This document shows positions 148 through 64,000 of a stretch of DNA of 64,000 nucleotides, one piece after another (the first letter of the stretch is position 1; each line of letters begins with the position of its first letter). The notes beneath the pieces are model-generated. The model searched no databases. It saw only the letters and a list, made by a program, of their open reading frames with translations, and had not been told where the DNA came from. This DNA is from Epithemia pelagica. Lineage: Eukaryota; Protista; Bacillariophyta. The stretch lies in the NCBI GenBank assembly GCA_946965045.2, contig OX337238.1, forward strand, positions 3,345,955-3,409,954, read 5' to 3'. The position numbers were made by a program, and so were the translations under genes.

Positions 148-3100
148 TCAGTCATTATTGGAAGGTTTGCGTCGTTTCCTCTCCCTAGGCGAAGGATCTT
201 GGTGCGAGGTAATATCATCTTCGTTGCACCGGCGCTCTCGTCTATTTGACAGGGCGAGGGCGCGTTCCTGATGGATTTTTAAACAAGAGATCACCTCTTT
301 TGCGACCTCTTCCATGTGACCAACCAACTGTTTGTATCTGGAATCTGTTCCGTTCAAGTCCACATAGCAACAACAACCAGGCAACCGCTTAGGTCCAGTT
401 CAAAAAGTCAAACATGAATTTTTCCTACCGGTACTTGTCCTGGAACACTTACCATAGAGGTTTTCGCCACCAATGGTACACCTATGCATGGATGGTAGTT
501 TGGTTGGAAACAAACCAATGAAATCATTGATCCATTCACTCGCATCCCGAGTACAAATTGCCGGTGTTGACGCACTCGCTGTTGCGCGACAAGGTGGAAG
601 AACCCATTGGCATCCTGGGAAGGCGTCCACTACCACTGGACTGAGAATCGAATGTGGGCAAGCCATTTCATTCCGAGCTAATGCACAGAGAAGTTCAGCA
701 ATCGGCCATTTCTTTTGGACATAATGTGTAGTCGTCACACACACACCACTCGTGCTGTTAGTACATGCGTCAACGTGGTCACTTCCGGATCTGGCTGTTG
801 TCCGGGCTTCATGGTCTTCTCTGCCACAAAAATATTGAGTGCGTTGCCGCCACCAGCCGCGTTTTGCAACTCACGCTCCAACCTGGTTACATAGTCAAAC
901 TCACGTTCTTTCCGAACTTCCCCAGCAAAAGAAATGAAAATGTCGTGTTCCGGTTTCTGGTTTTCAGAAGGAAGCTTGCCAAGCATCATCTTTGCCATCT
1001 CGATTCCAAGTCTCAAAATTTCTTGAAGTTTCTCTTTGTGATGTTCAGACAACTGTTTCAGTGCCTCTGTTCCTGCCATCTTAAGTCGTATCTTATTGAT
1101 TTTTGCAAGTACCGCCGATACTTCCAAAAGTCGTTCGCCGAGTTCGACAAAGCTCCATGACTGCATCGAATCTAACTTGGAAATCAGAGTATGCCCAATG
1201 AGAAAGGTAAGATCAAGAGATGTATCCAAACATTCCACGTCTTCACTTATTCGCGCAATAATCAGCCCAAGTAAATTGAAATTTTCTCCCAACAGCGAAT
1301 CACTATTGGACTTTGAAATGAGACTGCATTCTTGAGTTATTTCGTTGCTCGTGGCCTGATAACGACCGGCTGTTAACAACGGAACGTTGGGTCGATGAAT
1401 AGAGGAAGAAAGAGCATTTGCTTGATTTGTTCCGACATGAATGGTGTGCCATGGACGACCATCAATGGAAAGAAACAACCTCCGAAATGCTTCATCAGAT
1501 AAGGGCATGTGGGAGATAGAGAACCAAGACCATGTGGTGTTTCCTTCCAAAAAGTTACGCAGTAACGGTGCTCCCAGCTGGCCAATCTCGGTATGGGATA
1601 AATTCATACATCGCCAATCACGATTGCTATTCATACCTTCAACCAGCGCCTTGAATCCAGTGTCATTTAGATGTGTGTGCGCTAGATCAAAGATTTGCCA
1701 TTGAGGACTGTTTTGTAACAGGTCCGCAACGGCATTGGCTCCCTCCTCCCCAATGTCCAGATGACTCAACGACAAACGAACCCAATCGACATGGCCTTGT
1801 CGTCTAGATGCAAGAACGGCTGATGGCATGGAAGCACTGGTGCTGTTAATGTTCTTAGCTGATGCACCGTCACCTTGGATTGACTGGATCATTCGAAGGG
1901 CTGCGGGAAAGGTCAACCGTGGCGTGTGGTGCAGTGAAATGGTCCGAGGAATGGTAAACGGTCGACCGACACGCAGAGCCTGATTTGAAGGTAGCATGCG
2001 TAAATCCATGGATTTCCAGCAGTGTCCCAAATACTCTGCCACTTCCAGGGCATCGGTTGCTTTGTCATGACGGGTCAGGAATACATTGGAAATGGTATCT
2101 GCCGTCACTCCAATGTCGTCTGGATGGTTCTCTAGCAGAAAGGGCAGGTGCTGAATTGGATTCGTGCCACGCTTGTACGGAAACCACAGCACCAGCGAGT
2201 TCCAATTCTTCACCAACCGTTGGAGGATGGCTGGACCAAACTTGAGCCACGACCCAATTTCGTACAATCCTACATCTAATACAAACCGTTCCCAGCTTGG
2301 TGACGTTTTTAGTAGATTGGCCAACATTTCCACACCTTGGTCTGGAGTGCCATAAGGGAGACTCAAAATAAAATATTTCCAAGACGTCTGCCCACGGAGA
2401 CCCTTGGCCACTATGTCGACATGTTTTGTCTTGTCCAAATCCAGATCAAACACTCGCCAGACTGTATTGCCATGCAGTGAGTGGGCAACGGATCCCAGTC
2501 CTCCATCAAAATCAAAATGAGATGGGCATTTATAGCGACATGTTTCAGCATTGATTGCAACGCAAGGCATATGACAATGCTTCCAATTCACAGTCGTCGA
2601 TCAGAGCTGGCTTATCAAGTAGTGAGCCCTCAAGCTGAAATGATTTCCATGTCTTATTTTCACTCAAGGCTCCGCACAAGGCTTTGACTCCATTCATAGA
2701 GGAAACCAGTACGCACCAGAAGCTGAATATCTTCCAGTGGGAGTTTTGCTGGAGTGCTTCTGCCAGAGTTCTTATTGCTTCATCTTGAAGATTTGTACCA
2801 AGCACCAGCGACTGCCAAACATGATTATGGCTCAAAGCGCCAGCCAGTGCTTTCAATTCACTCGATCCCCAATCGCATATCCTCAACTCTACCCAGGACG
2901 GATTTGCATTGAGGGCACTCGCCAACCGAACCGCCGTTTTGTCGTCCAGGGCTTTTACTTCACCCAATGCTATCTCGGGATTTGGTGTGGTCGTTTGGAC
3001 GAATGCCCGGACGAGCGCTTCAATACCCACGTCACCAATATTCGTATCGGTGAGATCCAGATAGAACCAATCCACATCAGCACGTCCTCTGCCCCTGACG

Positions 3101-3194
3101 TTTTTATTCAAATCGAGAATGGCGGATTGCATTCGTTCATTTCATGGTTGTTTCCCTCCATTGTCGTTTCTGGAAGAGACATGGTGCGGTCCAT
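148..3194 (-). pseudogene. LRR-helical-TIR gene, copy 1 (disrupted)
   Basis: ORFs 2545-3132 and 735-2591 carry RI-like 28-aa LRRs (N..W..f.l......G..aL..aL). A helical segment follows, then a TIR domain (HDIFISFAGE...NIFVAEKTMKPG...VVCVTTTHYVQKKWPIAELLCAL) that continues in 400-744, with a likely last segment at 148-384. Lesions versus the paralogs: a 2-bp loss near 2545 (tgctgaaaca vs tgctgggaaaca on the minus strand), a 1-bp loss near 746 (acacacacaccact vs acacacacaaccact in copy 3), and a ~100-bp deletion near 3125. The exact splicing of the 3' end is unresolved. Confidence 0.8.
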
Positions 3195-4041
3195 TGACTT
3201 GTAGAGGCCGAAAGTCGTTGTCGTCGTCGTTTTAATGAGAGAGTATTATGCGAAAAAAAGATCTTGTGTTGGTACCGCCGTTCCAACTCAGCGGGGAACA
3301 TGTGTGTGAGTACAGTCCTCTCTATTCTGATGAGTATGCGAAGCGCGAGGAATCCTTGATGGGTCGCAACCTGCAACCTCCTGTAAGGGGGTTCGGATTC
3401 TCAGACAGACAGTGTCAGTTCTGTGTCGTCATCTACAGCATCGGATACAGTGATGCTTACATGTGACACAAAACGCGACGCAGAAAAGAAGAGTAAAGAG
3501 ACGAGAAAAATCTGGGGTGATTGTTCGACGGCCAACAGGAGACGATGTCCGTCTTTGCCATGGTCGACGAGACAATACAACAACACGATACACGATGGAC
3601 GTTCTCATATCTCTCAAGTTCCAAGTTCCAAACCACCAGCAAATGGCCTTGATCGTTTGTATTGCTGGAGTTCTTCGGGAGAGGCACCACGAAACACTGT
3701 GTACTACTAGGACGACGCATCCCGAACATTATACATGGCGACAAAAGTGACCGACAAGGACAGGCAACCGTGTCATGCTGATGGACTCCAACGATTGACC
3801 AGCAGTATACTAGCAGGATGGAACAACAAGAGCAGTGCCAACAACAACAACTTGATCGAAGCAACTGTCACGATTGTCTCGTGACAAAAGCTCCTACACC
3901 TCTTTGGTCCATCCATTTCGTCAAGTCAGTCGTGCTTCCAGTCCGCAAACATCAGAATTACAACAGCAGAGCAAACCTACGTGCCTCTTACAAGACAGTG
4001 TCTCGATCCCCATAAATTCGCTGCAGTCATTGTGTGGAACC

Positions 4042-7558: not shown

Positions 7559-8788
7559 ATGACAACGTTACAGAAAGAACAAGCATGGCAGTCGGGCCTT
7601 GTCTTATCGGACGAGACAGCAGAGTGGAATCAAAATGACTGGCCTCCACTTGTGGGTGGATGGCGTGCAGGTCATACTTCGGTCGTACTTGATCACCCCG
7701 ATACGGACGGCAACGACAACAACAACAACAACAAGAGACAAACCGTCGTCGTGTTGGGTGGATACCAGACAGTTCAAGGCGCGCTCGATTCCATTCTTGT
7801 ATTAAACTTGGCAGAATCAACCAAGCAGTGGCGAGAAGGGCCACGCATGAACCAGAAACGTTCTGGACATGCCACTGTTGTGTGCAACGGTGGCGTCTAC
7901 GTCATGGGAGGCTACAATGGAAGCTCAGTATTTGATTGTATCGAACGAATTGACGAAAATGATTTGCTGCTATCACCTTTAACAACAAACATCATCACAC
8001 ATGCGAGTAATTGGACGACATTGACATGTCGGTTATCATCTGGACGACATGGGTGTTGTGCTGTCGCGGTTCACAACCGATACATCGTTGTAATGGGTGG
8101 ATACAGCGATCGTTATTTGTCGTCGGTGGATATTATAGATACAAACAGCCACACTGTCATTGCCGGACCAAGCATGATTGTTCCACGACAATGGTTTGCC
8201 AGTGCGGTCATTGGTCACCGCATCTTTGTCGTTGGAGGTCATAACGATAATGGCCATCTTGACTCGGTGGAGTATTTGGACAATGCAACACCCTGTGACA
8301 ATGATGCGACAAAAAAGGAGATAGGCTCGACGTTCATATCTTTCTCGTCCCCTTGGATGACTCAGTCGGAGTTGAGGCTTTCCAATGCACAAAGTTCTTG
8401 TGCAATGGTTGCCGTTGGATCTTGTCTGGTGGTGGCTGGAGGATGGAGCAATTCAACGGTGGAAGTCTTGGATACGCACCACAACCGCGTGTGGAATCTC
8501 CCACCATTCGGAAATGACTACAATGACTGCAGTACGGTGACTGTTGCCAATCAAGTTGCCGTGATAAGTGGCTGGGGAAGTCCTACCTGTGCGACATTAC
8601 CACTACTGGACAAGCATACGCGGTGTTTTCAACGACTCTTTGACCAGCAGTTCAACATATGGTGTCTATTTCGGGAAGGAAGGAATATCCAACATGCTGA
8701 TAACTCGCCTTTCCCCACCTGGACATCAGATCGTAAACGAGCAAGGCCCCACACGCACCGTGGTGATGAAGTTTTGGATGAAACTTGA
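7559..8788 (+). CDS. Kelch-repeat protein K2
   Basis: Same six-blade pattern; ATG at 7559 (MTTLQKEQAW); intact ORF ending in TGA at 8788. Confidence 0.9.
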   Translation: MTTLQKEQAWQSGLVLSDETAEWNQNDWPPLVGGWRAGHTSVVLDHPDTDGNDNNNNNKRQTVVVLGGYQTVQGALDSILVLNLAESTKQWREGPRMNQKRSGHATVVCNGGVYVMGGYNGSSVFDCIERIDENDLLLSPLTTNIITHASNWTTLTCRLSSGRHGCCAVAVHNRYIVVMGGYSDRYLSSVDIIDTNSHTVIAGPSMIVPRQWFASAVIGHRIFVVGGHNDNGHLDSVEYLDNATPCDNDATKKEIGSTFISFSSPWMTQSELRLSNAQSSCAMVAVGSCLVVAGGWSNSTVEVLDTHHNRVWNLPPFGNDYNDCSTVTVANQVAVISGWGSPTCATLPLLDKHTRCFQRLFDQQFNIWCLFREGRNIQHADNSPFPTWTSDRKRARPHTHRGDEVLDET

Positions 8789-12713: not shown

Positions 12714-13186
12714 TGTTCAAAAGATCTACGTAATCGTCCGGGAATGGACCCGGGACTCCCATTCGGAAGTAGGAGATCGGCCGAAGAAAAGATGAGCATC
12801 ATTCCTCTTGAGAATTTGTCCCTCAAAGGACAAGAACGACGGGCATCCAAACAAGATGCTCACGAACGATACAACAAAGACAACGCGTCATCGTCATGAG
12901 CGTTTAGAAGTGACAAACCGGCCCAATTCAACTGATACAGGCCAAAAGAATAACTGGCATTGCCTAAAAGGAACAACGGCCAAGAACGGGCAGGAGACAC
13001 CCATTTAGGAAAACAAGATCGATGGACGATTGAACTATCGCCCAACCATCGACTCAACGCATCAAAAGGAAAGACCTCAACGCCTTAGGCTGCAACACGC
13101 TAGATTAACCAAATAAACTCACAACTTAACTTCGTTTACACGGGTTGAGCTCTTTCTCTTTTACCTACGGTAGGGAGAAAACAACA
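12714..13186 (+). repeat. 5' LTR
   Basis: Identical to 18574-19046 except one substitution seen (attcctcttg vs attcatcttg). Confidence 0.97.
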
Positions 13187-13200
13187 CGCTTCCTCTGCGC
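13187..13200 (+). promoter_or_regulatory. Putative primer-binding site complementary to the tRNA-iMet D-arm
   Basis: CGCTTCCTCTGCGC directly abuts the 5' LTR. Its reverse complement GCGCAGAGGAAGCG matches eukaryotic tRNA-iMet nt 10-23 (GCGCAGCGGAAGCG) at 13 of 14 positions. Confidence 0.6.
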
Positions 13201-13236
13201 TGTTAACAGCTTACACGTTGTCACTCAAGAATCACC

Positions 13237-14490
13237 ATGGCCGCGAACTTCGCTCTATCTCCAGCCCACGCCAACGCCAATCAAGTGATCAACTTCACGA
13301 CGGCAGGAGGCGCCAAGTTTTACAAGCAAGCGACACGTGGATTGTACGATGGTGGTGACCTCTACGACCTCAACGCAGAAGGATTGAAGACGTTCCTAGA
13401 TACCTTGCAGGATCGGATCGTGGAACAGAACTGGACGTCTATCTTTTCGATTCCAGAAGCAATCGCCGCTCCAGCAGCAAACCTTCGTAACTTGACGTCC
13501 GAATACGGTCGCGTCTCTCTTCAACAAGTCCGAGCCTTCGTCGACCACTACAATGGGCAGAATCGTCAGACGCAGAACTCATACATGGCCTACACATGTA
13601 TCATGGCTTCACTTACCAAAGACGCAAAGGCACAAGTGAATATTCGACGCGAAGATTTTACGATCAATGGCCGCGGAGCTGGACCTCTCCTTCTCAAGGT
13701 TCTCGTCTCGCTTGCTCATGTGGACACGGAAGCCACGGTTATGGTACTCCGTCAACGCCTGGCCGACTTGCACGTGTACATTATGGACATCAACGCGGAC
13801 ATCGCCAAGTTCAATTTCTATGTGGACGAAACCCTTCGAGCCCTCAACGCGCGCGGCGAGCAAACTCTGGACCTCCTTCCCAACCTTTTCAAGGCGTATG
13901 AAAATGTGAACGACGATAACTTTCTGGAGTTTATCCGTCGCAAGAAGAACGCATATGAAGAAGGTGACAATCCGGGATTGACCCCGCGCCAACTTATGAC
14001 ATTGGCACGCACCAAGTATCAGACCTTGATCAAGCAAAAGAAATGGCAGGCGCTCTCGGCACGTGACCAGAAACTGATCGCTCTCGAAGCATCCGTGAAC
14101 AAACTCAAGGACTCGAAACGTAAGGCAGTGCAGACGGACCAAAAGAAACAGTCAGCAAAAGTGAAGACGGACAAGACTACGGACACCAACAAGGGATGGC
14201 TTACGATTGGTCCCAAGAGCGGGCAACCGGAGGTTAAAGAAGTTAACGGCAAGACTTGGTATTGGTGCAAATGGCACCAGAAGTGGTCAACTAACAAGAA
14301 TCACACGTCTGCGACATGCAACGGACGTGGTCTTACCGGAGACAAGAAACGCGCTTATGACGAAGCTCACGGGACTGGTGACGGTGGAAGTCAAGCTGAT
14401 TCATCTACCCCAGGACTCCGCCTAGCAAGTGCCTTAGCTAACCTGTCTCCAGACGACGAAGAAGATGATGATGACAGCAACGACGAGTGA
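13237..14490 (+). CDS. gag: copia Gag
   Basis: A 417-aa ORF inside the LTR element with a C-terminal zinc-knuckle-like motif WCKWHQKWSTNKNHTSATC. Confidence 0.85.
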   Translation: MAANFALSPAHANANQVINFTTAGGAKFYKQATRGLYDGGDLYDLNAEGLKTFLDTLQDRIVEQNWTSIFSIPEAIAAPAANLRNLTSEYGRVSLQQVRAFVDHYNGQNRQTQNSYMAYTCIMASLTKDAKAQVNIRREDFTINGRGAGPLLLKVLVSLAHVDTEATVMVLRQRLADLHVYIMDINADIAKFNFYVDETLRALNARGEQTLDLLPNLFKAYENVNDDNFLEFIRRKKNAYEEGDNPGLTPRQLMTLARTKYQTLIKQKKWQALSARDQKLIALEASVNKLKDSKRKAVQTDQKKQSAKVKTDKTTDTNKGWLTIGPKSGQPEVKEVNGKTWYWCKWHQKWSTNKNHTSATCNGRGLTGDKKRAYDEAHGTGDGGSQADSSTPGLRLASALANLSPDDEEDDDDSNDE

Positions 14491-14539
14491 CAACCAAACC
14501 CGGGGTGGTTCCCCGGGCTGCTTCAAGACATCAAGCAGC
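14488..14539 (+). promoter_or_regulatory. Putative stop-codon readthrough signal
   Basis: TGA, then an 8-nt spacer CAACCAAA, then the stem CCCGGGG/TGGTT/CCCCGGG (14499-14517), then a second stem CTGCTT/AAGCAG. Gag and pol are in the same frame with no other stop between them. Confidence 0.7.
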
Positions 14540-17500
14540 TCATATACACAGTATTAGTGACGATCGTGTTATCAGGTTATACTATACTGTGTTTCGAGCT
14601 ATGGTCCCCTAGACGAACTACCATCGACTACTGGCTAAAGACCGCAAGCAACGCATGCGACCAGATGGCGACTACTATGGCGACCGCAATCAAGACGAAG
14701 AAGAAAAGACGACTCGACCATGGTAAACTACGACGACGGAGGAAGATGACCGGACTCCTAAGAGCATTATGCATGGTGACGATTCTTACTTCAACAACTG
14801 GATTAGTATCCAACAGAGCGGCCCATGACGTCGGATTCGATACCGACAGCCGCAAAGTACTCATCGACAACTGTGCCACTGCGTCCATCACCAACGACAT
14901 CAACGATTGTTGCACGAAACCAGTCAAGATTAAGCGACGAGTGAAAGGAGTGGCCGGGACGTTCCACCCAGACATTTACGAGACGACGATACGATGGGAT
15001 ATCGAGGACGACGATGGGAAAATACATACAATCACGCTTCCCCGATCATTCTACATCCCATCAACGCCGACGCGACTCTTGTCTCCACAACACTGGGCTC
15101 AAACCGCAAAAGACAACAAACCTGTACCGAGAGGGACTCGATGCACAACATATGGTAACAGTATCGAACTCGTGTGGGGACAAGGACACTTCAAACGAAC
15201 AGTGCCGCTCAACAAGAAGGGATCAAACGTTGGAGAATTCACAACGGCCCCAGGCTATACACGATACGAGACGTTCTGCAAGAAAGCGGGCACAACGATC
15301 GAACAAGAAGATAACAAACCACTGTTAGCTCACAACGCGAATCTTATCGAAGACGACGACGAGTCCATCATTGAACGATCTCCAGCAACGGTCGGAGAAG
15401 ACGAATCGACAGACGACGAGAGTATTTTCCAAAACGACAATCTCGACGACGAGGAAAATGAGAAGTACTTTCCGAGTAGAGATGTACCGATGACTACAGA
15501 ATTTCTCATCGGTCCGAATGAAACGGTACACGTGATCCCCAACGAAGAAGAACGACTACCCGAGAGTCCAACGCTAGAGTTACTCAGGACTCACCACCGT
15601 ATGGGACACCTCTCTATGGCTAAGATCCAATCAATGGCACGTCAGAGTATACTCCCAAAACGACTGGCTAACTGCAAAATACCTGTTTGTACAGCATGCA
15701 TGTACGGAAAGGCGACCAGACGCCCATGGAGAATCAAGGGTCATCGAGGTACATTGGACGTCATGACGTCACCAGGACAATGCGTATCCGTGGATCAAAT
15801 GATATCCAAGACTCCAGGGTATATAGCCCACTTACGAGGGACTCCAACACGGGACCGATATAAGGTGGCTACTATCTTTGTGGATCACTATTCAGGTATA
15901 GGTTACGTTCACTTGCAGAGAACTACATCGGCAAAAGACACTATAGAAGCTAAAGATCGATTCGAAGCATGGGCCGATACGCATGGAGTTGCAATTCGTC
16001 ATTACCATGCCGATAACGGTATCTTCGCTGACAACAAGTTCCGAGAAGCCGTCCAAGCGAAAGGCCAACGCCTTACCTTCAGCGGGGTCAACGCACACTT
16101 CCAGAGCGGTATGGCCGAACGCCGCATTCGGGACCTACAAGAATCAGCACGAACCATGCTAGTTCATGCACAGAGACGCTGGCCGTCCACCATAACGACG
16201 AACCTATGGCCCTACGCCATAAGATACGCCAACGACATGTTCAACGAAGCACCTATGAAGAAACAGAAAGACAAAACTCCAATGGAGTTATTCACTGGTT
16301 CAACAGTTCGGTTCAATACAAGACTAGCCCATACGTTCGGGTGTCCCGCTTACGTGCTTGACAACAATCTCCAGAGTGGAACACCTATCCCGAAATGGTC
16401 AGAACGCGCTCGGGTTGGCATTTTCTTGGGATACTCTCCGCAACATTCTAGAACCATTGGGCTTATTCTATCACTATCATCCGGATTGACGTCACCTCAG
16501 TTCCATGTGCAGTACGACGACGCTTTCGAAACACTAAGGGCGAGTTTTGGAGAAGCCCCGCCAGTATCACAATGGCAGTACAAAGCAGGATTTACGAAAA
16601 GAGCCCCACGAATGAGGGAGACAGCAAGTGTACCTCAACTCGGAAGCACAGCGACGTCACCAAGGAGAACAAGAATTGCAAACGACGTGCCGCATGACAA
16701 CGACGTATCACATAATGAAGAACCGTCCTCGGACACTATGCATCCTACCTTAGATGAGGGAGAAACGCTACCCCAACATGAGGGAGCTAGGCGGTCGCAA
16801 CGTACAACCCGTCGGACTCAGAGGTATCAGGACTATTTGACATCGCTACAAGACGAAAACGACGCCATTGCAGAATTAGCTATCACTGCTAAACCAGCGA
16901 TTACGGTCAAGACAGCCCAAGCAAACAGTAACCCAGATGTAATGTACTGGCATGAAGCTATGAAACAGAAGGATCGAGAAGAGTTCATCAAAGCCGCTCA
17001 GAAAGAAGTACAAGATCATAGCGACAATGGCCTATGGGAAGTTGTCAAAAGGAAGGATATTCCGAAAGGAGCATTGATTTCACGCGGAGTATGGAGCTGT
17101 GTTCGAAAACGAAGACTCAAAACAAGAGAAGTCTATAAATGGAAATCAAGGCTCGCTTACGACGGGTCTATGCAAGAAAAGGGAGTCAACTACTGGGAAA
17201 CATATGCCCCAGTTATTCAATGGCCGGTCGTCCGTTTTGTCTTAACTATGGCACTTACTCAAGGATGGCATATCAAGCAAGTTGATTACGTCTTGGCGTA
17301 TACGCAAGCAGTGGCGGAGACCGACATGTACATGGAGGCGCCAAGGAGCTTTACATTCGACACCAAAGGCAATCAACGAGCCGAGGATTACGTGCTCAAA
17401 ATCAAACAAAATTATTACGGCCAGAAACAAGGAGCCCGAGTATGGAACCAGCACTTGGTCAAGCGGCTGAAAGACGTGGGTTTCCAACAGAGTGCATATG

Positions 17501-18546: not shown

Positions 18547-18573
18547 CATCATCTTTCCCCGTCCGTGAGGGAG

Positions 18574-19046
18574 TGTTCAAAAGATCTACGTAATCGTCCG
18601 GGAATGGACCCGGGACTCCCATTCGGAAGTAGGAGATCGGCCGAAGAAAAGATGAGCATCATTCATCTTGAGAATTTGTCCCTCAAAGGACAAGAACGAC
18701 GGGCATCCAAACAAGATGCTCACGAACGATACAACAAAGACAACGCGTCATCGTCATGAGCGTTTAGAAGTGACAAACCGGCCCAATTCAACTGATACAG
18801 GCCAAAAGAATAACTGGCATTGCCTAAAAGGAACAACGGCCAAGAACGGGCAGGAGACACCCATTTAGGAAAACAAGATCGATGGACGATTGAACTATCG
18901 CCCAACCATCGACTCAACGCATCAAAAGGAAAGACCTCAACGCCTTAGGCTGCAACACGCTAGATTAACCAAATAAACTCACAACTTAACTTCGTTTACA
19001 CGGGTTGAGCTCTTTCTCTTTTACCTACGGTAGGGAGAAAACAACA
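18574..19046 (+). repeat. 3' LTR
   Basis: Copy of 12714-13186. Confidence 0.97.
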
Positions 19047-44100: not shown

Positions 44101-44310
44101 ACTTTAATAGCCCCGGGGGACTCCTCGTCGCAGGGCGCTCCTCGTGGCTTAACTCCTCGTCGGGCAATAGCTTCTCGTCGTGGACTGCCCCCTCAATCCG
44201 CTTACGCGGATCTCACAAGGGCAGTCCACTCCTCGTCGCTATTGCCCTTCTTGGAGCTAAGCCACTCCTCACACCCTAGCTCCTCCTCGTCCACCCTCAG
44301 CTATTAAAGT
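44101..44310 (-). ncRNA. Candidate structured RNA (rod with GNRA apical loop)
   Basis: Six or more nested stems. On the minus strand the apical loop is GUAA, and two A-C mismatches of the plus strand become G-U pairs. Confidence 0.45.
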
Positions 44311-44311
44311 A

Positions 44312-44881
44312 CTCCCTCCTGAAAGAAAATACTTCACGTTTTTTTTTGGTTATTTTAGTCGCATAAAAAGATTACGTAGGATCTGGTACAACTCTACAGG
44401 AGGACGGCCGGCTCATTCGGAGTATAAAAATTTTAGAATAATATGGGGGAACATATTGGTTGACATGCGTGAGTCTACACTATTATAGGAAAAGTACAAC
44501 TTTTGTGTGCGACGAGTGAGCAGAACCATGGCCAAAGGTGCCGTCGTTGACCATGGAATTCAGCATGGAAATGGCACGAATCTTGTCAGTTGCACGCATA
44601 TTCCTACTCTTTTATGCCTCGAGGGGCCGCCCTGAAGAGGACGTGTTTGGAGCCGCCATAGAAGTGTCAACCGGTGGGCTCTGAAGACCGATGCTCAAAA
44701 TCACGCCTTTTGAACAATCGTATCTCGTTCCAAAGCAAGAATCGAACATATAAATAATACACCAATATAGAGCTAATAAGTAGGGCTTTCTAACAAAAAA
44801 AAATTTATGGAAAAAGGACGTTCGCTCGTGAAAATATCGCTTTTTTGGTAAAATCGTGAAGTATTTTCTTTCAGGAGGGAG
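44312..44881. mobile_element. Stowaway-like (Tc1/mariner) MITE
   Basis: Perfect 27-bp TIRs CTCCCTCCTGAAAGAAAATACTTCACG (44312-44338 / 44855-44881) flanked by TA on both sides. Confidence 0.92.
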
Positions 44882-47328
44882 TAGATTTACCACCGCATTT
44901 TTGTCGTTGGGGGGCAAAACGATGATGGCCATCTTGACTCTGTGGAGTATTTGGAGAGAAAAGATGACACTTTGTCTACAGTCATTCCCTTTTCGTCTAG
45001 TTGGATCACTCATTCGGAGTTGAGGCTTTCCGAACTTCGAGGTTCATGTGCAATGGTTGCTGTGGGATCGTGTCTGGTGGTGGCGGGTGGACAAGGCCAT
45101 TCAACCGTGGAAGTCTTGGATACGCGCCGCAACCGCGTTTGGAATCTCCCACCATTCGGAAATCGCCGCGATGACTTCAGTATGGCGACTGTTGCCAATC
45201 AAGTTGCCGTGATAAGTGGTTTTGGCAGTCCTACCTGTGCGACATTACCACTACTTGACAAGCATACGTGGTGTTTTCAACGACTCTGTGAGCAGCAGCC
45301 CAACAGATGGTGTCTTTTTGGGGAAGGAATGAATATCCAACATGCTGATATTTCACCCTTCTCCACCTCGACATCAGCTCATAAACGCGCAAGGCCCAAT
45401 ACACGCCGTGGTGATGAAGGGAAGGATGGAACTTGAAATTTGCAACATATTGCATGTATGTCCTAACAATAGCGGAACTTTAGCATTATCATTTTACTCT
45501 CAAACAGTAGTTGGATTGTTTTCTTTATGACATTGCGACCTATAGAGATATAATGTACACTGTTGTACTAGTAGAAAACGAAAGTTACACTATCCTGCAT
45601 TACACCGCAAACAGGAGTGGAGCCAGGCCTTGGATATAGATGCCCATGGTACCATGCCTCTCTGCTGGTGAATGAGTCGAGTTATCTTGCTGTGGAAGAT
45701 TATGGTTGCGTGCCTGAAACACTTGGGCGCAGTGACTCGTTTTGGACGGTCGTCTTCGTTCCGACCATGCGTTCAATTGTGGGGCCCGGTCTTTCTATGG
45801 CCCATGCCTGCGTGTGAGGACAGTACCCCGTCTCTCGGTGCTTGTGGTTTCGGGTGACAGGACATTTGCGATTCCTTTGGAATTTGTGACACCGTCGTGT
45901 GTTCGATATTTTCTCCAATTCGGCAATTTGCTTGCGTCGATCCAGCAATCAGTCTCTCCGTAGTGGCTCGTTGACAGTCCATGGGTATCGGTCCATGGGG
46001 ATCCACAAGAAAAATCACAGTGCGCAAAGTTATGTCTTGCCCTTCAATACCAGTTCCGCCGAAACCATGTTGCACGATTGCGACACTGTCGAACAGCAGT
46101 GTTGGACGTCGACCACTATACAACATTTGTGCCTCGTACAGCGCCAACAAAACCACGACCCGCGCCGATCATGTCTTGGCTGTCGTCTAACAGCAGTGTT
46201 GGACCTCGATCACTACCACAGTTGAGTCTCGTACCGAATCAGCAGTACCAACAACAAAACCACGACCACGAATGCCTCCGATCATGTCTTGGCTGTAGTC
46301 TACTAGAACTTCTTGTTGTTCTTCTGCTTCGTTGGATTCTGGTTGGTTTTGCTGCCTTGTCGTTCCACACCAACAACCAGCTTGAATCTTTGTATGTAGA
46401 CTTGAAAGGGCGATGCGACCCTTTCCCACAATCAATTCTTCACTAGGGAGTCGAATTGCGTTCCGTACTTCGATCCGTAGTACTGGAGGAAGATTCTCGT
46501 TCCCGTCCTAGTGTTCTCCTTTCTTTGTTGTTTGTTACACTAGGACTCCTGTTGCGAATCGAAAACCAAGGGGCGATTTCTAGCTTGTTGCGATGAAAGT
46601 TGTCATTGAGTATGGTGTTCTTCTTTTGTCCAGTGTGACAGCGACAAATGCGGCTTGGTTGTTGTACTTTTGATATGGGATTCCGTCGAGGTTTCTTTCC
46701 TGGCTTGCGCTGTTGCGGCGACACTTGATGCTGCGTTTCATCCAATGGACATTTGGCAATCGGCTGCCACGACCAGGACTTGGTAGTCGACGATACTGGA
46801 CTGGAGGAGCACTTCCCACATACAAGTCCAACGCCAAAAGAGAGACACGTCTTCACACCGTCGTCAGATCGGTCCATGGAGATCCACAATAACAGTTTGC
46901 AGAGTACAAAGTATAGCCACTTTCCCATGGCACTATCACGGAGGAAGGAAAAAAAGACCATGGCTGTGCTGCGGCATCCCCACCCACCACCTCGTGTCCA
47001 AGTATGGCTTGCTGGATTGTCCATGCGAGCAAACAAACGGCAAACATCTGGATTCTAAATGACAGCACTTGTGGTGCATACATGAGTATAACACTTTGGT
47101 CCTCCACTGTTGCACGTCTAGTGGAGGAGGACAATCTTTGTTAAAAAAAGCACAATAGTGGCCGTATGGTGCTGATTGCTGATTTTATCGTTTCAATGGA
47201 TCTTAAAGCGATCCAAAGAAGACGAATGCAGGCGTCTGCTGTGAGCTAATGCAACACGGGAAGCGAGTCAGAATGGGATGAATGACATGTTCCTTCTGGT
47301 CCATCATGTCGTCAGATTCTTGTGTTTG

Positions 47329-47706: not shown

Positions 47707-48915
47707 ATGACAACGACACTGCAAAAGCAAGCATGGCAGTCGGGCCTTGTCCTGTTAGACGAGACACCTGAATGGAATTTCGAGCACTGGCCTCCTCTTG
47801 AAGGTGATTGGCGTTCTCGTCATGCTTCGGTCGTGCTGAATCGTACCGATAACAACAAGGAACAAACCGTCGTCGTGTTGGGAGGATATCGAACAGGCCA
47901 AGGCGAGCTAGATTCCATTCTTGTAATGAATTTAGCGGAATCAAACAAGCAGTGGCGAGAAGGGCCGTCCATGGACAAGAAACGTGGGCATCATGCCGCT
48001 GTTGTGTGCAATGGCGGCGTCTACGTGATGGGAGGATACTCTGAAGGTTCATGTTTGAATTGTATCGAACGAATTGATGCCAATTATTTGCTGCAATCAT
48101 CTTTGACAACCAGCATCACACACGAGATGAACTGGACGACATTGAATTGTCGCTTATCAACGCCACGATCAGGATGTTGTGCTGTCGCGGTTCACAACCG
48201 ATACATCGTTGTAATGGGTGGCTACAACGGTCGTTATTTGTCATCGGTGGATATTATTGATACCAGGAACCACACTGTCTCTGTGGGACCATCCATGAAT
48301 GTTCCTCGATTTTGTTGTGCCAGTGCTGTTATTGGACACCGCATCTTTGTCGTTGGAGGTTGGAACGAGCATGGTCGTGTTGACAAGGTGGAGTATTTGT
48401 ACTATGCAACACCCTGTGACAGTGATGTGACAAAAAAGGAGATAGGCTTGACATTCATTTCTTTCTCACCCACCTGGACCACTCATTTGGAGTTGAGGCT
48501 TTCCAATGCACGAAGATCTTGTGCAGTGGTTGCCGTGGGATCTTGTCTGGTTGTGGCGGGAGGATGGGGTTCAACCGTGGAAGTGTTGGATACGAACCGC
48601 AACCTCGTATGGAATCTTCCACCATTCGGAAATGTCCACAATCATCGCGAAGGCTGCAATATGGTGACTGTTGCCAATCAACTTGCCGTGATTGGTGGGT
48701 GGAGCAATTCGACCTGTGCGACATTACCGTTAATGGACAAGAATTCGTGGTGTTTTTGCCGTCTCTGTGAGCAGCAATCGAACGGATGGTATTATTCTCT
48801 TAAAGGTATGGGTATCCGAGATGCTGATATCTCACCCTTTTTCACCTCGGCATCAGCTCGTAAACGAGCAAGGACCAATACATGCCAAAAAGATAGAGGG
48901 CATGATGAAACTTAG
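47707..48915 (+). CDS. Kelch-repeat protein K7
   Basis: Intact six-blade ORF; ATG at 47707. Confidence 0.9.
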   Translation: MTTTLQKQAWQSGLVLLDETPEWNFEHWPPLEGDWRSRHASVVLNRTDNNKEQTVVVLGGYRTGQGELDSILVMNLAESNKQWREGPSMDKKRGHHAAVVCNGGVYVMGGYSEGSCLNCIERIDANYLLQSSLTTSITHEMNWTTLNCRLSTPRSGCCAVAVHNRYIVVMGGYNGRYLSSVDIIDTRNHTVSVGPSMNVPRFCCASAVIGHRIFVVGGWNEHGRVDKVEYLYYATPCDSDVTKKEIGLTFISFSPTWTTHLELRLSNARRSCAVVAVGSCLVVAGGWGSTVEVLDTNRNLVWNLPPFGNVHNHREGCNMVTVANQLAVIGGWSNSTCATLPLMDKNSWCFCRLCEQQSNGWYYSLKGMGIRDADISPFFTSASARKRARTNTCQKDRGHDET

Positions 48916-50744: not shown

Positions 50745-51683
50745 CTAGTCATCTTCCACTTCGATCTGAAACACTTTCGCCTCACCATTTTCAATCTTCA
50801 TCTGAACCAGATTCACCACTGCTCCAAACACCTTGTGATGCCCATCCAGATCTCCTCTGTATTTTTCCTTTAAGATATTGTAATGTTTCAGTAAATTGTT
50901 GACAGTTTCATGTCTCGCCCTGGCGTCAGCCATCATCTTGTCTTGATAGTCATTTCTTCCAGTAGGTGTGACAAAGTAGCATCCAGAATCGTTGTAACCA
51001 CCATCAGCAATCACTTTCTCATTCGGTAGTAGCTCTTGAACAAGCCAGTCTCTGGCAATCCGTAGGTCTGGCCAAGCGCCACAAGGGAATGCACCATTCC
51101 ACCACACTATCCAGCCAGTTTTCAGGCAGATTCCCACCTCATACCTCACACCTGCTCCCTTAAACTTGTGCGAGTACCATTTTGGATCAAAAGGTGACGG
51201 CTCCAAAATCCTGAAGTCAGTACCATCCAAACTAATGAAACAGACCTGTCCAGGTACACAACAATCAAACCTATTTTCCCATGCAATCTGTTATAAGAAC
51301 AACAGCAATGGTCAGACATGAGGAGGACGACTTCATGGCAGATTCATGTAGGGCCGTGTACTTACATAATTAAGACCACTATACAACAAATTTACAAACA
51401 CTTTGACCCATTTCCTGTAGGTCTTCCTCGTTGTTTTGGCTATTGAGACCATAACATCCTCTGTAGCATAGACTTTCAGAAAAGCCAGTGTCCACAACAA
51501 ATGACGAGGCGATGCACCTTTGGGCAATGAACTGTCGAGTTCATCCCACACATGAACACAGAGCAAAGGAGACATTCCAAAGTAAGAACGAAAAGCACGT
51601 GAGAAATCAAGTGAGTGTGAGTGTCTTGCTCTACCAAGCATTGGCAGAGCCGAGTTGATGAATGTTCGTTGTGTCACCAACAT
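50745..51683 (-). CDS. Harbinger DDE transposase (exons 51683-51366 and 51287-50745)
   Basis: A 78-bp GTAAG...CAG intron joins ...SGLNY|IAWENRF...SLDGTDFRI in frame. The catalytic triad lies in DGTD, ADGGY and HETVN. Confidence 0.88.
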
Positions 51684-54104: not shown

Positions 54105-55060
54105 TCAGTCATTCTTGGAAGGTTTGCGTCGTTTCCTTTGCCTAGGCAAAGGATCAGGCAAAGGATCCTGGTGCGAGGTATAATCTTCGTTGCACCGGCG
54201 CTCTCGTGTAGTTGAGAGAGCGTGTTCCTGATGGATTTTGAAATAAGAGATCACCTCTTTTGCGACCTCTGCCATGTTACCAACCAACTGTTTGTATCTG
54301 GAATCTGTTGCGTTCAAGTCCGCATAGCAACAACAACCAGGCAACCGCTTAGGTCCAGTTCAAGAAGTCACACATGAATTTTTCCTACCGGTGTTGTCGG
54401 GAAACACTTACCATAGACATTTTCGCCACCAATGGTACACCTATGTATGGACAGTAGTTTGGCTGGAAACAAACCAATGAAATCATTGATCCATTCGCTC
54501 GCATCCCGAGTACAAATTGCCGGTGTTGACGCACTCGCTGTTGCGCGACAAGGTGGAAGAACCTATTGGCATCCTGGGAAGGCGTCCACTACCACTGGAC
54601 TGAGAATCGAATGTGGGCAAGCCATTTCATCCCGAGATAATGCACAGAGAAGTTCAGCAATCGGCCATTTCTTTTGGACATAATGTGTAGTTGTCACACA
54701 CACAACCACTCCTGCTGTTAATACATGCGTCAACATGGTCACTTCCGGATCTGGCTGTTTTCCGCGCTTCATGGTTTTCTCTGCCACAAAGATATTGAGT
54801 GTGTTGCCGCCACCAGCTGCGATTTGCAACTGATCCTCCAAACTGGTGACGTAGTCAAACTCACGTTCTTTCCGAACTTCCCCAGCAAAAGAAATGAAAA
54901 TGTCGTGTTCCGGTTTCTGGTTTTCAGAAGGAAGCTTGCCAAGCATCATCTTTGCCACCTCAATTCCAAATCTCAAAATTTCTTGAAGCTTCTCTTTCTG
55001 GTGATCAGACAAGTTTGTCAGCGCCGCTGCCCCAGATATCTTAAGTCGTATCCCATTGAT
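54105..55060 (-). pseudogene. LRR-TIR gene, copy 3 (5'-truncated: TIR plus end of the helical segment only)
   Basis: HDIFISFAGEVRKEREFDYV...KKWPIAELLCAL. Homology to copy 1 ends at about 55060, where Kelch 3'-end DNA begins. Confidence 0.8.
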
Positions 55061-57529
55061 TCTAAAGGTCCAATTCTCAAAGTGGTGATGAAGGGAAGGA
55101 TGAAGCCTAGATGTTTGTTTTCAAGTCATTGACTTGTTTTCTTCATTCGATTTCAATACTAGAACCTTGTAGGTAGTTACTCAAAAGTAGAAAGAACATG
55201 TTGCAAGATAGAAGGTGCTTGCTTGATTTCAAAGCTGTGGAAAGAAGGACCAAATTTTTTTGTCTCTACAAGTGGTAGTGCCACCACCGTGCTTGTGCGG
55301 TCGTGAGACTAGAATCTGGGGCTTTGTGGTGGCATCAGGGCACTTTGTAGGACACAGAGTCACCGTCCATGGATCGGTAGGTATATGGCAGGGACACCGA
55401 AATCCGACAGTGGTGCATTCCAGAGAGGACGAGTTTCGCATCGATCTCGTAGCCAAGGGCAATACGGTTTGTCGCCATTTTGTGTCCACTACGATTGAGT
55501 AGTGAAGAGTACTTTTAGTGTTCGTGACCGGGCAAATTCAGGCATGTTTTTTTGACATTGTGGTTGCCGTGACTGTCAAGGGTGCGCCATCCTGTCTTTC
55601 TTGGCTTGGGATGCTGTAGCTACGACACAATTTTGCTGTGGACCACGACCATTGGTGGATCATTTGTTACCATCCAAACAATACTTGAAGAACACCGAGG
55701 GAGAGTCTCCGCAGTAATTGGTTGTGATATTGGTGGACTTCTTGTCTGGTTTGAGTAAATAAGCATGTGAAGTCCTGGCGGTTCTTGCCGCATCGGCTTG
55801 TTCCTCTTGTGGTTGGTTCCTCCTTGTTGGAGCGACAAATCACTCGACGCGGGAAAGGTAGTGGTGGTGCTACTGTGTCAGTCGTTTCAGTCTGGGGTGC
55901 TGGTGGACCGTGTTCCAAAATAACCAACTTGTCGTGGTAGTCGTTCTTTGGTCCACACCAATTGCCGATGATCGATCGAGACCAATCATTCACTACTATT
56001 GGATATTGCGAGAAGGAGGGCAAAACGGGATGCCTGTTGTGCATCCGACGATTGTTGTTGTTGTTGTTGTTTCGGTCCTGTTGGTGGATCGGGAATCATG
56101 ATTTTTCTTTTCTTGTCATGCTCCTTGATGAAAGAGCAGGATGGTTGTTCTTGCTGTTGTTGTTTGGGTGTAATTGGTTGTTCTTGTTGTACGTTGTCGT
56201 CAACATATCGTAGTACAATCAAGTGACTGCATTGTCTTTGCTCTTTTCCTCCACGAACCACATCTGCTCGTGCTCCATGTTTTGGCTTGGTTCATGGTCG
56301 TGGTCGATGAATCCGACAAAAGGACGAAAAGGAGGAGTAACAGCACGACTGGCGAAACCTTGCGGACCCTGTAGTCCGCTTCTCTGATAGTTCTCTTTGG
56401 AAATCGAGCATGGTTGGTTGCTGCTTCTCTACATTCCTCGTCGTCATGTGAAGAACGAATGATTGTTGATCGAGCAAAGACGGAATGGAACTGTCGTTGA
56501 GAAGCAAGGGGAAGCAACCAGTCTCTCGACTGGCACTACCAGGTCGACAGTTGTTCAATGGAACTTGCTGTGGGTGCCTCTTGTCGTCTGTTGTTGGTTC
56601 AAAAATGCATCCCGGTACCTTATTCTCGCCTTTGGAGGAACGGGAAGCAACACTGCAAGAAGCGCCAGAAATGTTCTGGCAATTGGGCTGTCAATCTTGT
56701 TCATCCGTTCGTCGGAGCTACTAGCTTCATTTTTGTCAGTGTCCTTCTCTTCGTCCTGTTTGCCGTGTTCTGACTGGCTAGCATGTATGATGGTACTGCA
56801 TCGTTTGTTTTGGGGGATCTGATGTCTAGTCATTCCAGATCTGAGTTCTGCAATGGGAACCGCCAATTTGCTCATTCCTGAGAATTTGCGATTCTTGTCG
56901 CCGTCTTGTCTTATGAGTTCAGTCACTCTATCTTGTCGATGAACGGACTTCTCTTCAGGCTCGATACTAACATATACTCTTGTTTGTGCTCTTACTGCCT
57001 TGTCTCCTCAAATGCAGGCGTCTTCTGCTGTTGCAACAACGAAAGCGACTCAAAATGGGATAAATGACATGTTCCTTCTGGTCCATCTGGTCGTCAGATT
57101 CTCGTTTTGGCGTAGTTGTGCATGTGGCCTTGGCTCCGTCACAAAGCAATGCCCATTCGAATCATTGGATCAAGAAGTCAAGAAGACCACTCTCTGTTGT
57201 TGTTGTTGTTGCTGTCATTGTGAACAGTCCGCATGACCACGGGAATAATGGCGCTCCAAAAAAGGCTTTGGACGAGAGATGACTTGGAAACTAGGGATAT
57301 CGACCCAGTGGATGTTGGATGTTGGATTGGCCATCTGTGGACCTCTTCATCATACGAGGACTCGTCGTATCCTAAAAAGCACAGCAAAAGAAACTTCTTG
57401 GTACTTCTTGGGGCTTGTCATGTAATCTATGAGCGATTGACTTCCCTTCACCATCGTACGCATGACAGGCACAGCTCGCGTTGCTTAAAGCTGTCATTGC
57501 TCGTCCACGTTGTAGAGCGCCCCGTGACC

Positions 57530-58743
57530 ATGACAACGCCACTGAACGAACAAGCATGGCAGTCGGGCCTTGTCCTGTTAGACGAGACACCTGAATGGAA
57601 TTTCGAGGACTGGCCTCCTCTTGTGGGTGGATGGCGTGCAGGTCATGCTTCGGTCGTACTGAATCATCCCGATACGGAAAACGAGACCAACGACAGGCGG
57701 CAGACGGTCGTCGTGTTGGGAGGATATCAACAAGGCCAAGGCGATGTCAACTCCGTTCTGCTATTGAATCTGGCAGACCCAAACAAGCAGTGGCGAGAAG
57801 GGCCACCCATGAACAAGAAACGTGCTGGACATGCCACTGTTGCGTGCAACGGTGGCGTCTACGTCATGGGAGGTCGCAATACAACATCTTTGGATTGTCT
57901 GGAACGAATTGACTTGAATGATTTGTTTCAATCATCTTTGACAACAAGTAGCACACGTGCGAGCCATTGGACGACATTGACATGTCGATTATCAACGGGA
58001 CGAGTGGGATGTTGTGCTGTCGCGGTTCACAACCGATACATCGTTGTAATTGGTGGCTACAATAATCGTTATTTGTCGTCGGTGGATATTATAGATACAA
58101 ACAGCCACACTGTCATTGCCGGACCAAGCATGATTGTTCCACGGCAATGGTTTGCCAGTGCGGTCATTGGTCACCGCATCTTTGTCGTTGGAGGGTCTAA
58201 TGAGCATGGCAATCTTGCCTCGGTGGAGTATTTGGACTTCGCAACACCCTGTGGCAATGATGAGACAAAAAAGAGACTGGTTCTACATTCATTTCTTTCT
58301 CACCCACCTGGACCACTCATTCGGAGTTGAGGCTTTCCAATGCACGAAGTCCTTGTGCAATGGTTCCCGTGGGATCTTGTCTGGTGGTGGCGGGAGGATG
58401 GAGAAATTCAACCGTGGAAGTTTTGGATACGCACCGCAACCGTGTGTGGAATCTCCCACCATTCGGAAATGACCACAATGGCTGCAATATGGTGGCTGTT
58501 GCCAATCAAGTTGCCATGCTTGGAGGATGGTACAATCCATCCTGTGCGACATTACCACTTCTGGATAGGAATTCGTGGTGTTTTCGTCGACTCTGTGAGC
58601 AGCAATCGAACGGATGGTATCATTCTCTTGAAGGTATGCGTATCCGAGATGATGATTTCTCACCCTTCTCCACATCGACATCAGCTCGTAAACGAGCAAG
58701 GCAGAATACGCGCCAAAATAAGAAAGGGTCTGATGAAACATAG
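57530..58743 (+). pseudogene. Kelch gene K8 with a -1 frameshift
   Basis: gacaaaaaagagact vs gacaaaaaaggagact in K5 near 58273; both halves match the Kelch consensus. Confidence 0.82.
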
Positions 58744-61224: not shown

Positions 61225-62436
61225 ATGACAACGACACTGAAAGAACAAGCATGGCAGTCGGGCCTTGTACTTTTGGAAGAGACACCTGAATGGAATTTGG
61301 AGGACTGGCCTCCTCTTGTGGGTGGATGGCGAGAGCGTCATGCTTCGCTCGTACTCGACACGGACAACGATAACAAACACAAGAGACAAACTGTCGTCGT
61401 GTTGGGAGGATATAAACAAGGCCAAGGCCATACCAAGTCCGTGCTTGTATTGAATCTAGCAGACCCAAACAAGCAGTGGCGAGAAGGGCCACCGATGAAC
61501 AAGGCACGTTCTGGACATGCCGCTACTGTGTGCAACGGAGGAGTCTACGTCATGGGAGGCTACAATGGAAGCTCAGTATTTGATTGTATCGAACGAATTG
61601 ACGAAAAGGAGTTGCTGCTATCACCTTTAACAACAAACAGCATCACACATGCGAGCAATTGGACGACATTAACTTGTCGATTATCAACGCAACGATGGGG
61701 ATGTTGTGCTGTCGCAGTGCACAACCAATATATTGTTATGATGGGTGGCTACAACGGTCGTTATTTGTCGTCGGTGGATATTGTTGATACCAGGAACCAC
61801 ACTGTGATTGAAGGACCATCTATGACTGTTCCACGACAATTTTTTGCCAGTGCGGTCATTGGTCAGCGCATCTTTGTCGTTGGAGGCGGTAACGAGAATG
61901 GCGATCTTGACTCGGTCGAGTATATGGACTACGCAACCCTCTGTGACAATGATGAGGCAAAGAACAAGACTGGTTCGAGATTCATTTCCTTCTCGACCCT
62001 TTGGACCACTCATTCGGGGCTGAGGCTTTCCAATGCACGAAGGTCTTGTGCGATGGTTGCCGTGGGATCTTGTCTGGTTGTGGCGGGAGGATGGCACAAT
62101 TCAACCGTGGAAGTCTTGGATACGCACCGCAACCGCGTGTGGAATCTTCCACCATTAGATAATCACCGCGAAGGCTGCAGTCTAGTGACTGTTGCCAATC
62201 AAGTTGCCGTGATTGGTGGACTCCGCAATCCTTCCTGTGCAACATTACCACTACTGGATAGGAATACGTGGTGTTTTCGTTGTCTCTGTGAGCAGCAATC
62301 GAACGGATGGTATCATTCTCTTGAAGGTGTAGGTATCCAAGATGATGATATCTCACCCTTCTCCACATCGACATCAGCTCGTAAACATGCAAGGCCCAAT
62401 ACGCACCGTGGTGATGAAGGGAAGGATGGAACTTGA
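61225..62436 (+). CDS. Kelch-repeat protein K9
   Basis: Intact six-blade ORF; ATG at 61225. Confidence 0.9.
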   Translation: MTTTLKEQAWQSGLVLLEETPEWNLEDWPPLVGGWRERHASLVLDTDNDNKHKRQTVVVLGGYKQGQGHTKSVLVLNLADPNKQWREGPPMNKARSGHAATVCNGGVYVMGGYNGSSVFDCIERIDEKELLLSPLTTNSITHASNWTTLTCRLSTQRWGCCAVAVHNQYIVMMGGYNGRYLSSVDIVDTRNHTVIEGPSMTVPRQFFASAVIGQRIFVVGGGNENGDLDSVEYMDYATLCDNDEAKNKTGSRFISFSTLWTTHSGLRLSNARRSCAMVAVGSCLVVAGGWHNSTVEVLDTHRNRVWNLPPLDNHREGCSLVTVANQVAVIGGLRNPSCATLPLLDRNTWCFRCLCEQQSNGWYHSLEGVGIQDDDISPFSTSTSARKHARPNTHRGDEGKDGT

Positions 62437-63414: not shown

Positions 63415-63540
63415 ATGCCGACGACATTGAAAGAACAAGCATGGCAATTGGACCTTGTCCTACCGGACGACACAGCAGAATGGAATGAAAACGACTGGCC
63501 TCATGCTTCCGTCGTGCTTGATCATCCCGATAAAGACAAT

Positions 63541-63581
<41 letters not shown>

Positions 63582-64000
63582 GAGACAGACGGTCGTCGTG
63601 ATGGGAGGAATTCAACAACGCCGAGGCTATGTCAATTCCATTCTTGTATTGAATCTAGCAGAATACAATAAGCAGTGGCGAGAAGGGCCACCCATGAACA
63701 AGGCACGTTATGGACATGCTGCTGTTGTGTGCAATGGCGGCGTCTACGTCATGGGTGGAGACCAAAGAGTCGGCGAGTCTTTGGATTGTATCGAACGAAT
63801 CGATGTCAGTGAATTGCTGCAATCATGTTCTACATCAAGCATCACACACGAGAGCCATTGGGCGACATTAACTTTTCGATTATCAACAGGGCGATGGGGA
63901 TGTGGTGCTGTTGCAGTTCACAACCGATACATCGTTGTAGTGGGTGGCTACAGCAATCGTTCTTTGTCGTCTGTGGATATTATTGATACCAGGAACCACA
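63415..64000 (+). CDS. Kelch-repeat protein K10 (partial, runs off the window)
   Basis: ATGCCGACGACATTGAAAGAACAAGCATGG start, open to the window end, an in-frame deletion in blade 1, and (AAC)13 at 63541-63579. Confidence 0.85.

Follow-up and report, generated by a model that had tools for sequence, protein, structure and literature searches.

Kelch genes interleaved with LRR-TIR pseudogenes in Epithemia pelagica: a candidate immune-like receptor locus

Do Kelch genes, and genes encoding leucine-rich repeat (LRR) proteins that end in a domain of the Toll/interleukin-1 receptor (TIR) type, recur together in a diatom genome because they act together, or only because they were once placed side by side? 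The question is raised by a 64,000-nucleotide stretch of Epithemia pelagica (contig OX337238.1, positions 3,345,955 to 3,409,954), referred to here as the window. The window is part of ctg1236l (281,380 bp) of the European Nucleotide Archive (ENA) assembly ERZ21939226. Its sequence marks the window as a piece of a lineage-specific birth-and-death locus. What the locus might encode is an immune-like repertoire, in which diversified intracellular Kelch binders are accompanied by a conserved LRR-TIR arm. We would put the prospects of this proposal at about half, and functional coupling of the two families is plausible within it.

Kelch genes and their variable loops

The window contains ten intronless Kelch genes, all on the plus strand. 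Seven are intact, two are broken, and one is cut by the end of the window, as determined by tblastn, Pfam, and translations. Three LRR-TIR copies were located by tblastn, all on the minus strand, and all three are pseudogenes. Broken LRR-TIR copies were searched piecewise, by reference; the pieces were left unjoined and stops were not read through. The original prediction, made from the letters and open reading frames (ORFs), had described ten intronless Kelch genes on one strand, three LRR-TIR copies on the other, and frequent pseudogenisation. All of this is borne out, with no LRR-TIR copy intact and two Kelch copies broken. GC content in the window is 45-54%. The members of the two families are as follows.

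433..3138, minus strand: LRR-TIR pseudogene A; frameshifts near 2504-2551 and near 740 (GT run); three frame segments in tblastn of P0122
4042..5235, plus strand: Kelch gene 1; intact ORF of 397 aa; LRR-TIR copy A lies head-to-head with it; Pfam Kelch_1 3.5e-30
7559..8788, plus strand: Kelch gene 2; intact, 409 aa; Pfam Kelch_1 2.7e-31; closest paralogue on ctg1300l (synonymous divergence, dS, 0.075)
21025..22212, plus strand: Kelch gene 3 (P0001); intact, 395 aa; Pfam 3.7e-36; exact gene call on ctg1236l; protein modelled by AlphaFold2 (AF2)
24509..25645, plus strand: Kelch gene 4; intact, 378 aa; Pfam 5.9e-31
28032..31101, minus strand: LRR-TIR pseudogene B; in-frame stop at 30196-30198, approximately 160 aa missing, frameshift near 28500; Pfam LRR_6
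39700..40899, plus strand: Kelch gene 5; intact, 399 aa; Pfam 5.8e-30; a retroelement lies between it and LRR-TIR copy B
42821..45403, plus strand: Kelch pseudogene 6; lacks its start, has an in-frame stop, and is interrupted at 43588-44890 by 1.3 kb of inserted DNA that holds a miniature inverted-repeat transposable element (MITE)
47707..48915, plus strand: Kelch gene 7; intact, 402 aa; Pfam 1.6e-34; within the 90% identical duplicate of 24267-27345
54371..55063, minus strand: LRR-TIR fragment C; 5'-truncated, last 232 aa (part of the linker and the TIR); 88% identical to P0122; Trp-to-stop change
57530..58710, plus strand: Kelch pseudogene 8; frameshift near 58270; the tblastn matches 57509-58279 and 58267-58710 fall in two frames
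61225..62436, plus strand: Kelch gene 9; intact, 403 aa; Pfam 1.3e-34
63415..64000, plus strand: Kelch gene 10; open at the window end; translation only

The seven intact Kelch ORFs are 378-409 aa in length and share the N-terminus M-T-T-T-L-K-E-Q-A-W. Kelch pseudogene 6 is recovered by tblastn as two pieces, 42689-43591 and 44885-45403. The upstream region of Kelch gene 5 is common to Kelch gene 1 by blastn. Kelch gene 10 has approximately 14 Asn codons in its first blade loop, and approximately 10 residues of its first D-A loop region are gone.

Recent duplication had also been claimed for the array, which does not hold for most copies. Kelch DNA in the window is 77-85% identical with a median dS of 0.39, so most of the duplications are old. 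The youngest internal duplicate pairs 24267-27345 with 47477-50565 at 90% identity (blastn).

Beyond the window, the Kelch family is large. A word search gave 507 matches, or approximately 500 clusters at 90% identity in the one assembly. The best 120 of the 507 are 62-88% identical and are located on approximately 23 long contigs. An exhaustive search returned 139 clusters (50% identity) at E<1e-30. All 20 sampled clusters are restricted to ENA and to this assembly, and the housekeeping proteins beside the Kelch loci are likewise ENA-only among those sampled. The family is described as lineage-specific because none of the sampled relatives lies elsewhere. Its members are stand-alone, intronless proteins of approximately 400 aa, encoded in head-to-tail tandem arrays and composed of a conserved scaffold with conserved N- and C-terminal tails.

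The AF2 model of P0001, together with an alignment of 106 paralogues, predicts a six-bladed propeller at residues 36-345, mostly at high confidence, with disordered tails; mean pLDDT across the whole protein is 75. The best Foldseek matches are the Kelch domains of KLHL12, KLHL20, KLHL3, and Keap1, with a target-normalised TM-score (TMt) of approximately 0.8. Kelch_1 E values of 1e-27 to 1e-36, the predicted six-bladed fold, the Gly-Gly doublet, and a conserved Tyr/Trp/Arg motif place these proteins in the Kelch-repeat superfamily. No BTB, BACK, or F-box domain was found by Pfam in any of eight window proteins, and only approximately 35 aa precede the propeller.

Variation within the family is not evenly spread. 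Column entropy across the 106 paralogues is strongly periodic, with columns of 2.3-3.45 bits and up to 17 residue types lying beside invariant columns in all six blades. Each blade has two to six hypervariable positions, which can be sorted into two sets. The first set is the one or two positions directly after the conserved Arg in each D-A loop. The second set lies in the B-C loop, at the positions (+1 to +6) that follow each Gly-Gly doublet. The substrate pocket of Keap1 is formed by its D-A and B-C loops (PMC12314335). The variable loops of the family are thus the pocket loops of Keap1, and the scaffold and tails are kept while the canonical binding face is diversified.

The ratio of nonsynonymous to synonymous divergence (dN/dS) was calculated for the 17 Kelch genes with DNA as pairwise Nei-Gojobori values, which are close to saturation and ignore recombination. 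Loop codons chosen beforehand from the motif have a dN/dS of 1.06 vs 0.37 for the rest of the propeller. When 21 sites were set on independent paralogues, dN/dS was 1.50 vs 0.20 at conserved sites (cross-validated). This contrast between loop and scaffold is strong and falls short of proof of positive selection. With tandem paralogues, pseudogenes, and a diversified binding surface, the locus has the features of a birth-and-death cluster.

The LRR-TIR family and its linkage to Kelch genes

The LRR-TIR family has approximately 13 called proteins or fragments, all in ERZ21939226. Intact members (P0122, P0123, P0124, and P0133-P0135) are approximately 930-1160 aa in length. They are composed of two blocks of RNI/NLR-type LRRs (approximately 18 repeats), a helical linker, and a C-terminal TIR. 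Pfam assigns LRR_6 and TIR/TIR_2 to them, with TIR scores that equal the gathering score or lie close to it. In the window itself, the TIR is a marginal Pfam match of 24.5 bits in the ORF at 27993-28499 (copy B), and is confirmed by the intact paralogues elsewhere. The window units are read from sequence as dead copies of working paralogues located elsewhere in the genome.

The best profile matches of the TIR region are plant TIR structures (AtTIR, Roq1, L6, RUN1, and RPS4), and bacterial TIR structures were also matched. An invariant Glu, kept in 11 of 11 sequences, aligns with the catalytic Glu of the plant W-C-L-x-E-L motif. Both Pfam and the profile thus identify a TIR domain with a Glu in its W-x-x-x-E-L helix. 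The proteins have no NB-ARC/NACHT match in Pfam and no Walker A motif, which sets them apart from nucleotide-binding LRR receptors (NLRs) of the STAND class. They also have no signal peptide and no conserved hydrophobic or membrane segment, and their LRRs are of the cytosolic RNI/NLR type, which sets them apart from Toll-like receptors (TLRs). PADLOC returned a weak TIR-like match only. A single scan of JGI metagenomes returned only a 2.3 kb contig (L008) with a TIR-only ORF at 35% identity. This ORF (L008 183-1004, Ga0210366_10013622) is 273 aa in length and resembles the helical linker and TIR, including H-Y-V-Q-K-K-W-P, with no LRR on the short contig.

Intact LRR-TIR genes are under purifying selection, with omega (dN/dS) of 0.21-0.35 in the TIR and 0.40-0.78 in the N-terminal LRR block, at dS up to >1. 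Within one pair of genes from L002, L003, L004, and L006, dS varies three- to four-fold by domain; in one example pair the N-terminal LRR has a value of 0.30 vs approximately 1.0 for the C-terminal LRR plus linker. This unevenness points to recombination or gene conversion among paralogues.

Linkage was examined in the 10 kb flanks of seven further LRR-TIR genes and in two control loci picked by their Kelch gene alone. All seven LRR-TIR loci have a Kelch gene at a distance of 10 kb or less, in three arrangements, so the co-occurrence expected across the genome was found. In the first arrangement (L002, L003, L004, and L006), the LRR-TIR gene is located inside an array on the strand opposite to the Kelch genes, as in the window. 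In the second (L009), which contains the most divergent LRR-TIR gene (39% identity), tandem Kelch-then-LRR-TIR pairs share one strand where an array borders on ordinary genes; this locus also holds a truncated LRR-TIR copy. In the third (L005 and L007, which are syntenic), the LRR-TIR gene stands among housekeeping genes, with a lone divergent Kelch gene (33-41% identical to the array family) 5-8 kb away. The sequence common to L005 and L006 is the 3.6 kb LRR-TIR unit only. The remaining LRR-TIR matches are on contigs that also bear the Kelch family. In one control locus (L010), the relic of a decayed LRR-TIR gene is flanked by Kelch genes that lie on the other strand.

A 1400-aa ORF separates the single Kelch gene from the LRR-TIR gene at L005 (3625-7827, minus strand) and L007 (4324-8526, minus strand) and is 78% identical across the two contigs. 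It has no Pfam or PADLOC match, and an N-terminal hydrophobic segment resembling a signal anchor is present. Also considered was whether the LRR-TIR unit is a mobile element whose 3' end falls sharply at window position 124; this was rejected, as other copies are homologous beyond 124.

The proposed repertoire might work as follows. Kelch propellers would be intracellular binders for varied, probably non-self, ligands. LRR-TIR proteins would be a near-invariant signalling or executioner arm, the TIR NADase being switched on by oligomerisation. Any contact with a shared partner, possibly the LRR domain, would most obviously be made by the conserved Kelch tails, and copies would arise and be lost by unequal crossing-over and recombination. 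Persistent linkage is what suggests the coupling of Kelch and LRR-TIR proteins, with the tails as a plausible docking element. Taken to its full extent, this would be a two-component form of protist immunity, in which a Kelch sensor binds a pathogen ligand, engages the LRR of an NTPase-less LRR-TIR protein by way of its tails, and triggers TIR NADase signalling or cell death. We regard that specific mechanism as unlikely.

Several observations weigh against joint action of the two families. The second control locus (L011) is without an LRR-TIR gene, and its Kelch genes are scattered among housekeeping genes. Kelch genes outnumber LRR-TIR genes by approximately 500 to approximately 13, or about 40 to 1. 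LRR-TIR copies are often dead, including all three in the window, so the window itself holds no working sensor/effector pair; the immune-like receptor cluster of the original prediction is supported as an inference from the diversified Kelch binding face and the retained TIR catalytic Glu, and fails as a description of this window as a working pair. New LRR-TIR copies arise inside arrays by local duplication; much of the linkage may thus be a product of inheritance and not of selection, and truly independent juxtapositions may number perhaps two or three. A dedicated partner lineage of Kelch genes was rejected, since the LRR-TIR-adjacent Kelch genes form no clade in the tree. The full-length LRR-TIR structure model is poor (pLDDT 45). 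In the Kelch family, a loop dN/dS near 1 could also be compatible with relaxed constraint, and the ratios are pairwise Nei-Gojobori values near saturation with recombination ignored.

Much of this would be expected if the linkage were historical only. Kelch genes would then have diversified independently, for example as adaptors or decoys, and an LRR-TIR gene would have landed once in an array, where unequal crossing-over amplified it along with them and eroded it, with no joint action. Dead LRR-TIR copies (three of three in the window, the L010 relic, and the truncated copy at L009), the lack of a clade among the adjacent Kelch genes, the ratio of about 40 to 1 with Kelch genes also found alone, and the mosaic makeup of paralogous blocks all favour this account. 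It is harder to reconcile with intact LRR-TIR genes on which purifying selection acts and which retain the catalytic Glu across lineages with dS above 1, or with a Kelch neighbour that is kept in all three arrangements. The L005/L007 copy has only its own 3.6 kb in common with an array copy, yet it stands among housekeeping genes beside a Kelch gene that is very divergent. Historical linkage is a possible explanation, and one we consider somewhat improbable.

Transposons, constraint, and assembly context

The original prediction had counted five classes of transposable element in the window. Four kinds were found, and the fifth is a candidate repeat with a 303-aa ORF that has no family match. 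The four kinds are as follows.

12714..19046, plus strand: Copia long terminal repeat (LTR) retrotransposon; 473-bp LTRs 99.8% identical; RVT_2 and gag_pre-integrase
approximately 31400..39300, plus strand: RVT_1 retroelement between LRR-TIR copy B and Kelch gene 5; RVT_1 ORF at 34784-38821 and a 1096-aa ORF without a family
44310..44883, no strand assigned: MITE-like element; 34-nt terminal inverted repeats, 97% complementary
50748..51290, minus strand: PIF/Harbinger-type transposase remnant; DDE_Tnp_4

The near identity of the Copia LTRs indicates a very recent insertion, and no copy of this element was found in the other loci fetched. Strand skew in the RVT_1 retroelement is extreme, with AT skew reaching 0.45 and GC skew at about -0.3. 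A copy at L002 (2330-8258) is 68% identical and is likewise located between LRR-TIR and Kelch genes. The 303-aa-ORF repeat is present in the window at 26069-26980, 49289-50200, and 59988-60482, at L002 (14281-14731), and at L003 (5333-5799). It recurs between Kelch units at 88-90% identity, which is above that of the Kelch genes, and for this reason is probably a young non-autonomous transposon.

An array so rich in transposons could itself be a set of decaying repeats or transposon cargo under relaxed constraint, with loop variability produced by neutral drift. An overall pairwise dN/dS of approximately 0.5 among Kelch genes and a star-like family tree would agree with decay. Set against it, seven of nine complete copies keep full ORFs despite the median dS of 0.39, and the scaffold has a dN/dS of 0.20-0.37 with many invariant structural residues. 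Variability is limited to like loop positions in every blade, and no transposon hallmark was found beside the Kelch/LRR-TIR units. Decay and drift are therefore very improbable as the source of the pattern.

An ordinary gene context is available at L005 and L007 (ctg1362l and ctg1347l), which are syntenic over approximately 16 kb, housekeeping genes included, with DNA that is 90-92% identical. Of the protein clusters at 90% identity, many consist of exactly two members, each on a different contig. It seems that two diverged haplotypes, subgenomes, or strains are present in the assembly. Contig pairs and two-member clusters of this kind could also result if haplotigs had been collapsed or duplicated, or sequences chimerically joined, during metagenome assembly, but such an artefact is scarcely credible as the origin of the locus, since window copies differ by 10-25% in DNA and have their own flanks and transposon insertions, and the array architecture is repeated on >10 long contigs.

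At L005 (19219-21407), an aminopropyltransferase gene has a bacterial-type AdoMetDC gene (PF02675) as its immediate upstream neighbour in the same orientation. Diatom fusion proteins with an aminopropyltransferase domain have been described (PMC12803844, citing Michael 2011). The gene pair recalls these fusion proteins, which are thought to make long-chain polyamines, and is a weak hint of a diatom origin.

Relation to known receptor systems

In logic, the closest analogue of the proposed repertoire is the group of fungal NLRs with WD40 propellers (Podospora het-e/het-d/nwd; PMC4986451, PMC12222747). Both would use intracellular recognition by a beta-propeller with a few diversified positions per repeat on the binding face, and both are large, paralogue-rich birth-and-death families with recombination among copies. 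The fungal proteins combine the propeller with a NACHT NTPase and an effector domain in one chain, whereas here the Kelch protein stands alone with no NTPase, and LRR-TIR, the candidate effector, is encoded by a linked gene of its own.

In TIR sequence and cluster dynamics, the closest systems are plant TIR-NB-LRR (TNL) clusters. Like these and like sensor/helper NLR pairs, the locus shows tandem birth-and-death, pseudogenes, transposons, the TIR catalytic Glu, and head-to-head pairs. It differs from them in having no NB-ARC, an LRR-then-TIR order, and LRRs of the RNI type, and its hypervariable module is the Kelch protein and not the LRR.

In fold, Kelch domains of Keap1 and other KLHL proteins are closest. 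The six-bladed propeller is shared with BTB-Kelch proteins such as Keap1/KLHL and with plant F-box-Kelch proteins (TMt approximately 0.8), and the variable sites match the D-A/B-C pocket of Keap1. Unlike BTB-Kelch and F-box-Kelch proteins, the window proteins have only short conserved tails and no BTB, BACK, or F-box by Pfam, and so no evident route to a cullin ligase.

Among microalgae, according to a study in New Phytologist of TIR genes linked to virus resistance in Gephyrocapsa huxleyi (PMC12489294), no TIR-based antiviral system had been described earlier. Those genes share with the present family a cytosolic TIR with a catalytic Glu, and an antiviral role has been proposed for them in that haptophyte. 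The Gephyrocapsa proteins have expression evidence and are not reported with NBS/LRR partners or Kelch arrays, while the locus described here is known from sequence alone.

Literature searches, both diatom-focused and for any organism, found no report of a hypervariable or expanded Kelch family or of Kelch genes linked to LRR/TIR genes. With no report of a hypervariable stand-alone Kelch repertoire or of its LRR-TIR link, the locus is rated as a version of the birth-and-death immune-like receptor cluster built from unusual parts. By sequence it would be classed apart from TNL/NLR proteins, from TLRs, and from BTB-Kelch and F-box-Kelch proteins.

The innate immunity of microalgae and other protists is barely charted. 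The problem of the variable receptor has so far been met by LRRs in plants, animals, and the variable lymphocyte receptors of lampreys, and by WD40, ANK, or TPR repeats in fungal NLRs. Kelch propellers that number in the hundreds and have diversified on the face that binds would answer this problem in a new way. Their physical link to NTPase-less LRR-TIR genes suggests a design in which sensor and executor are separable. If the two-component reading of Kelch sensor and LRR-TIR executor is true, this architecture would be unlike NLRs, TLRs, or any described algal system.

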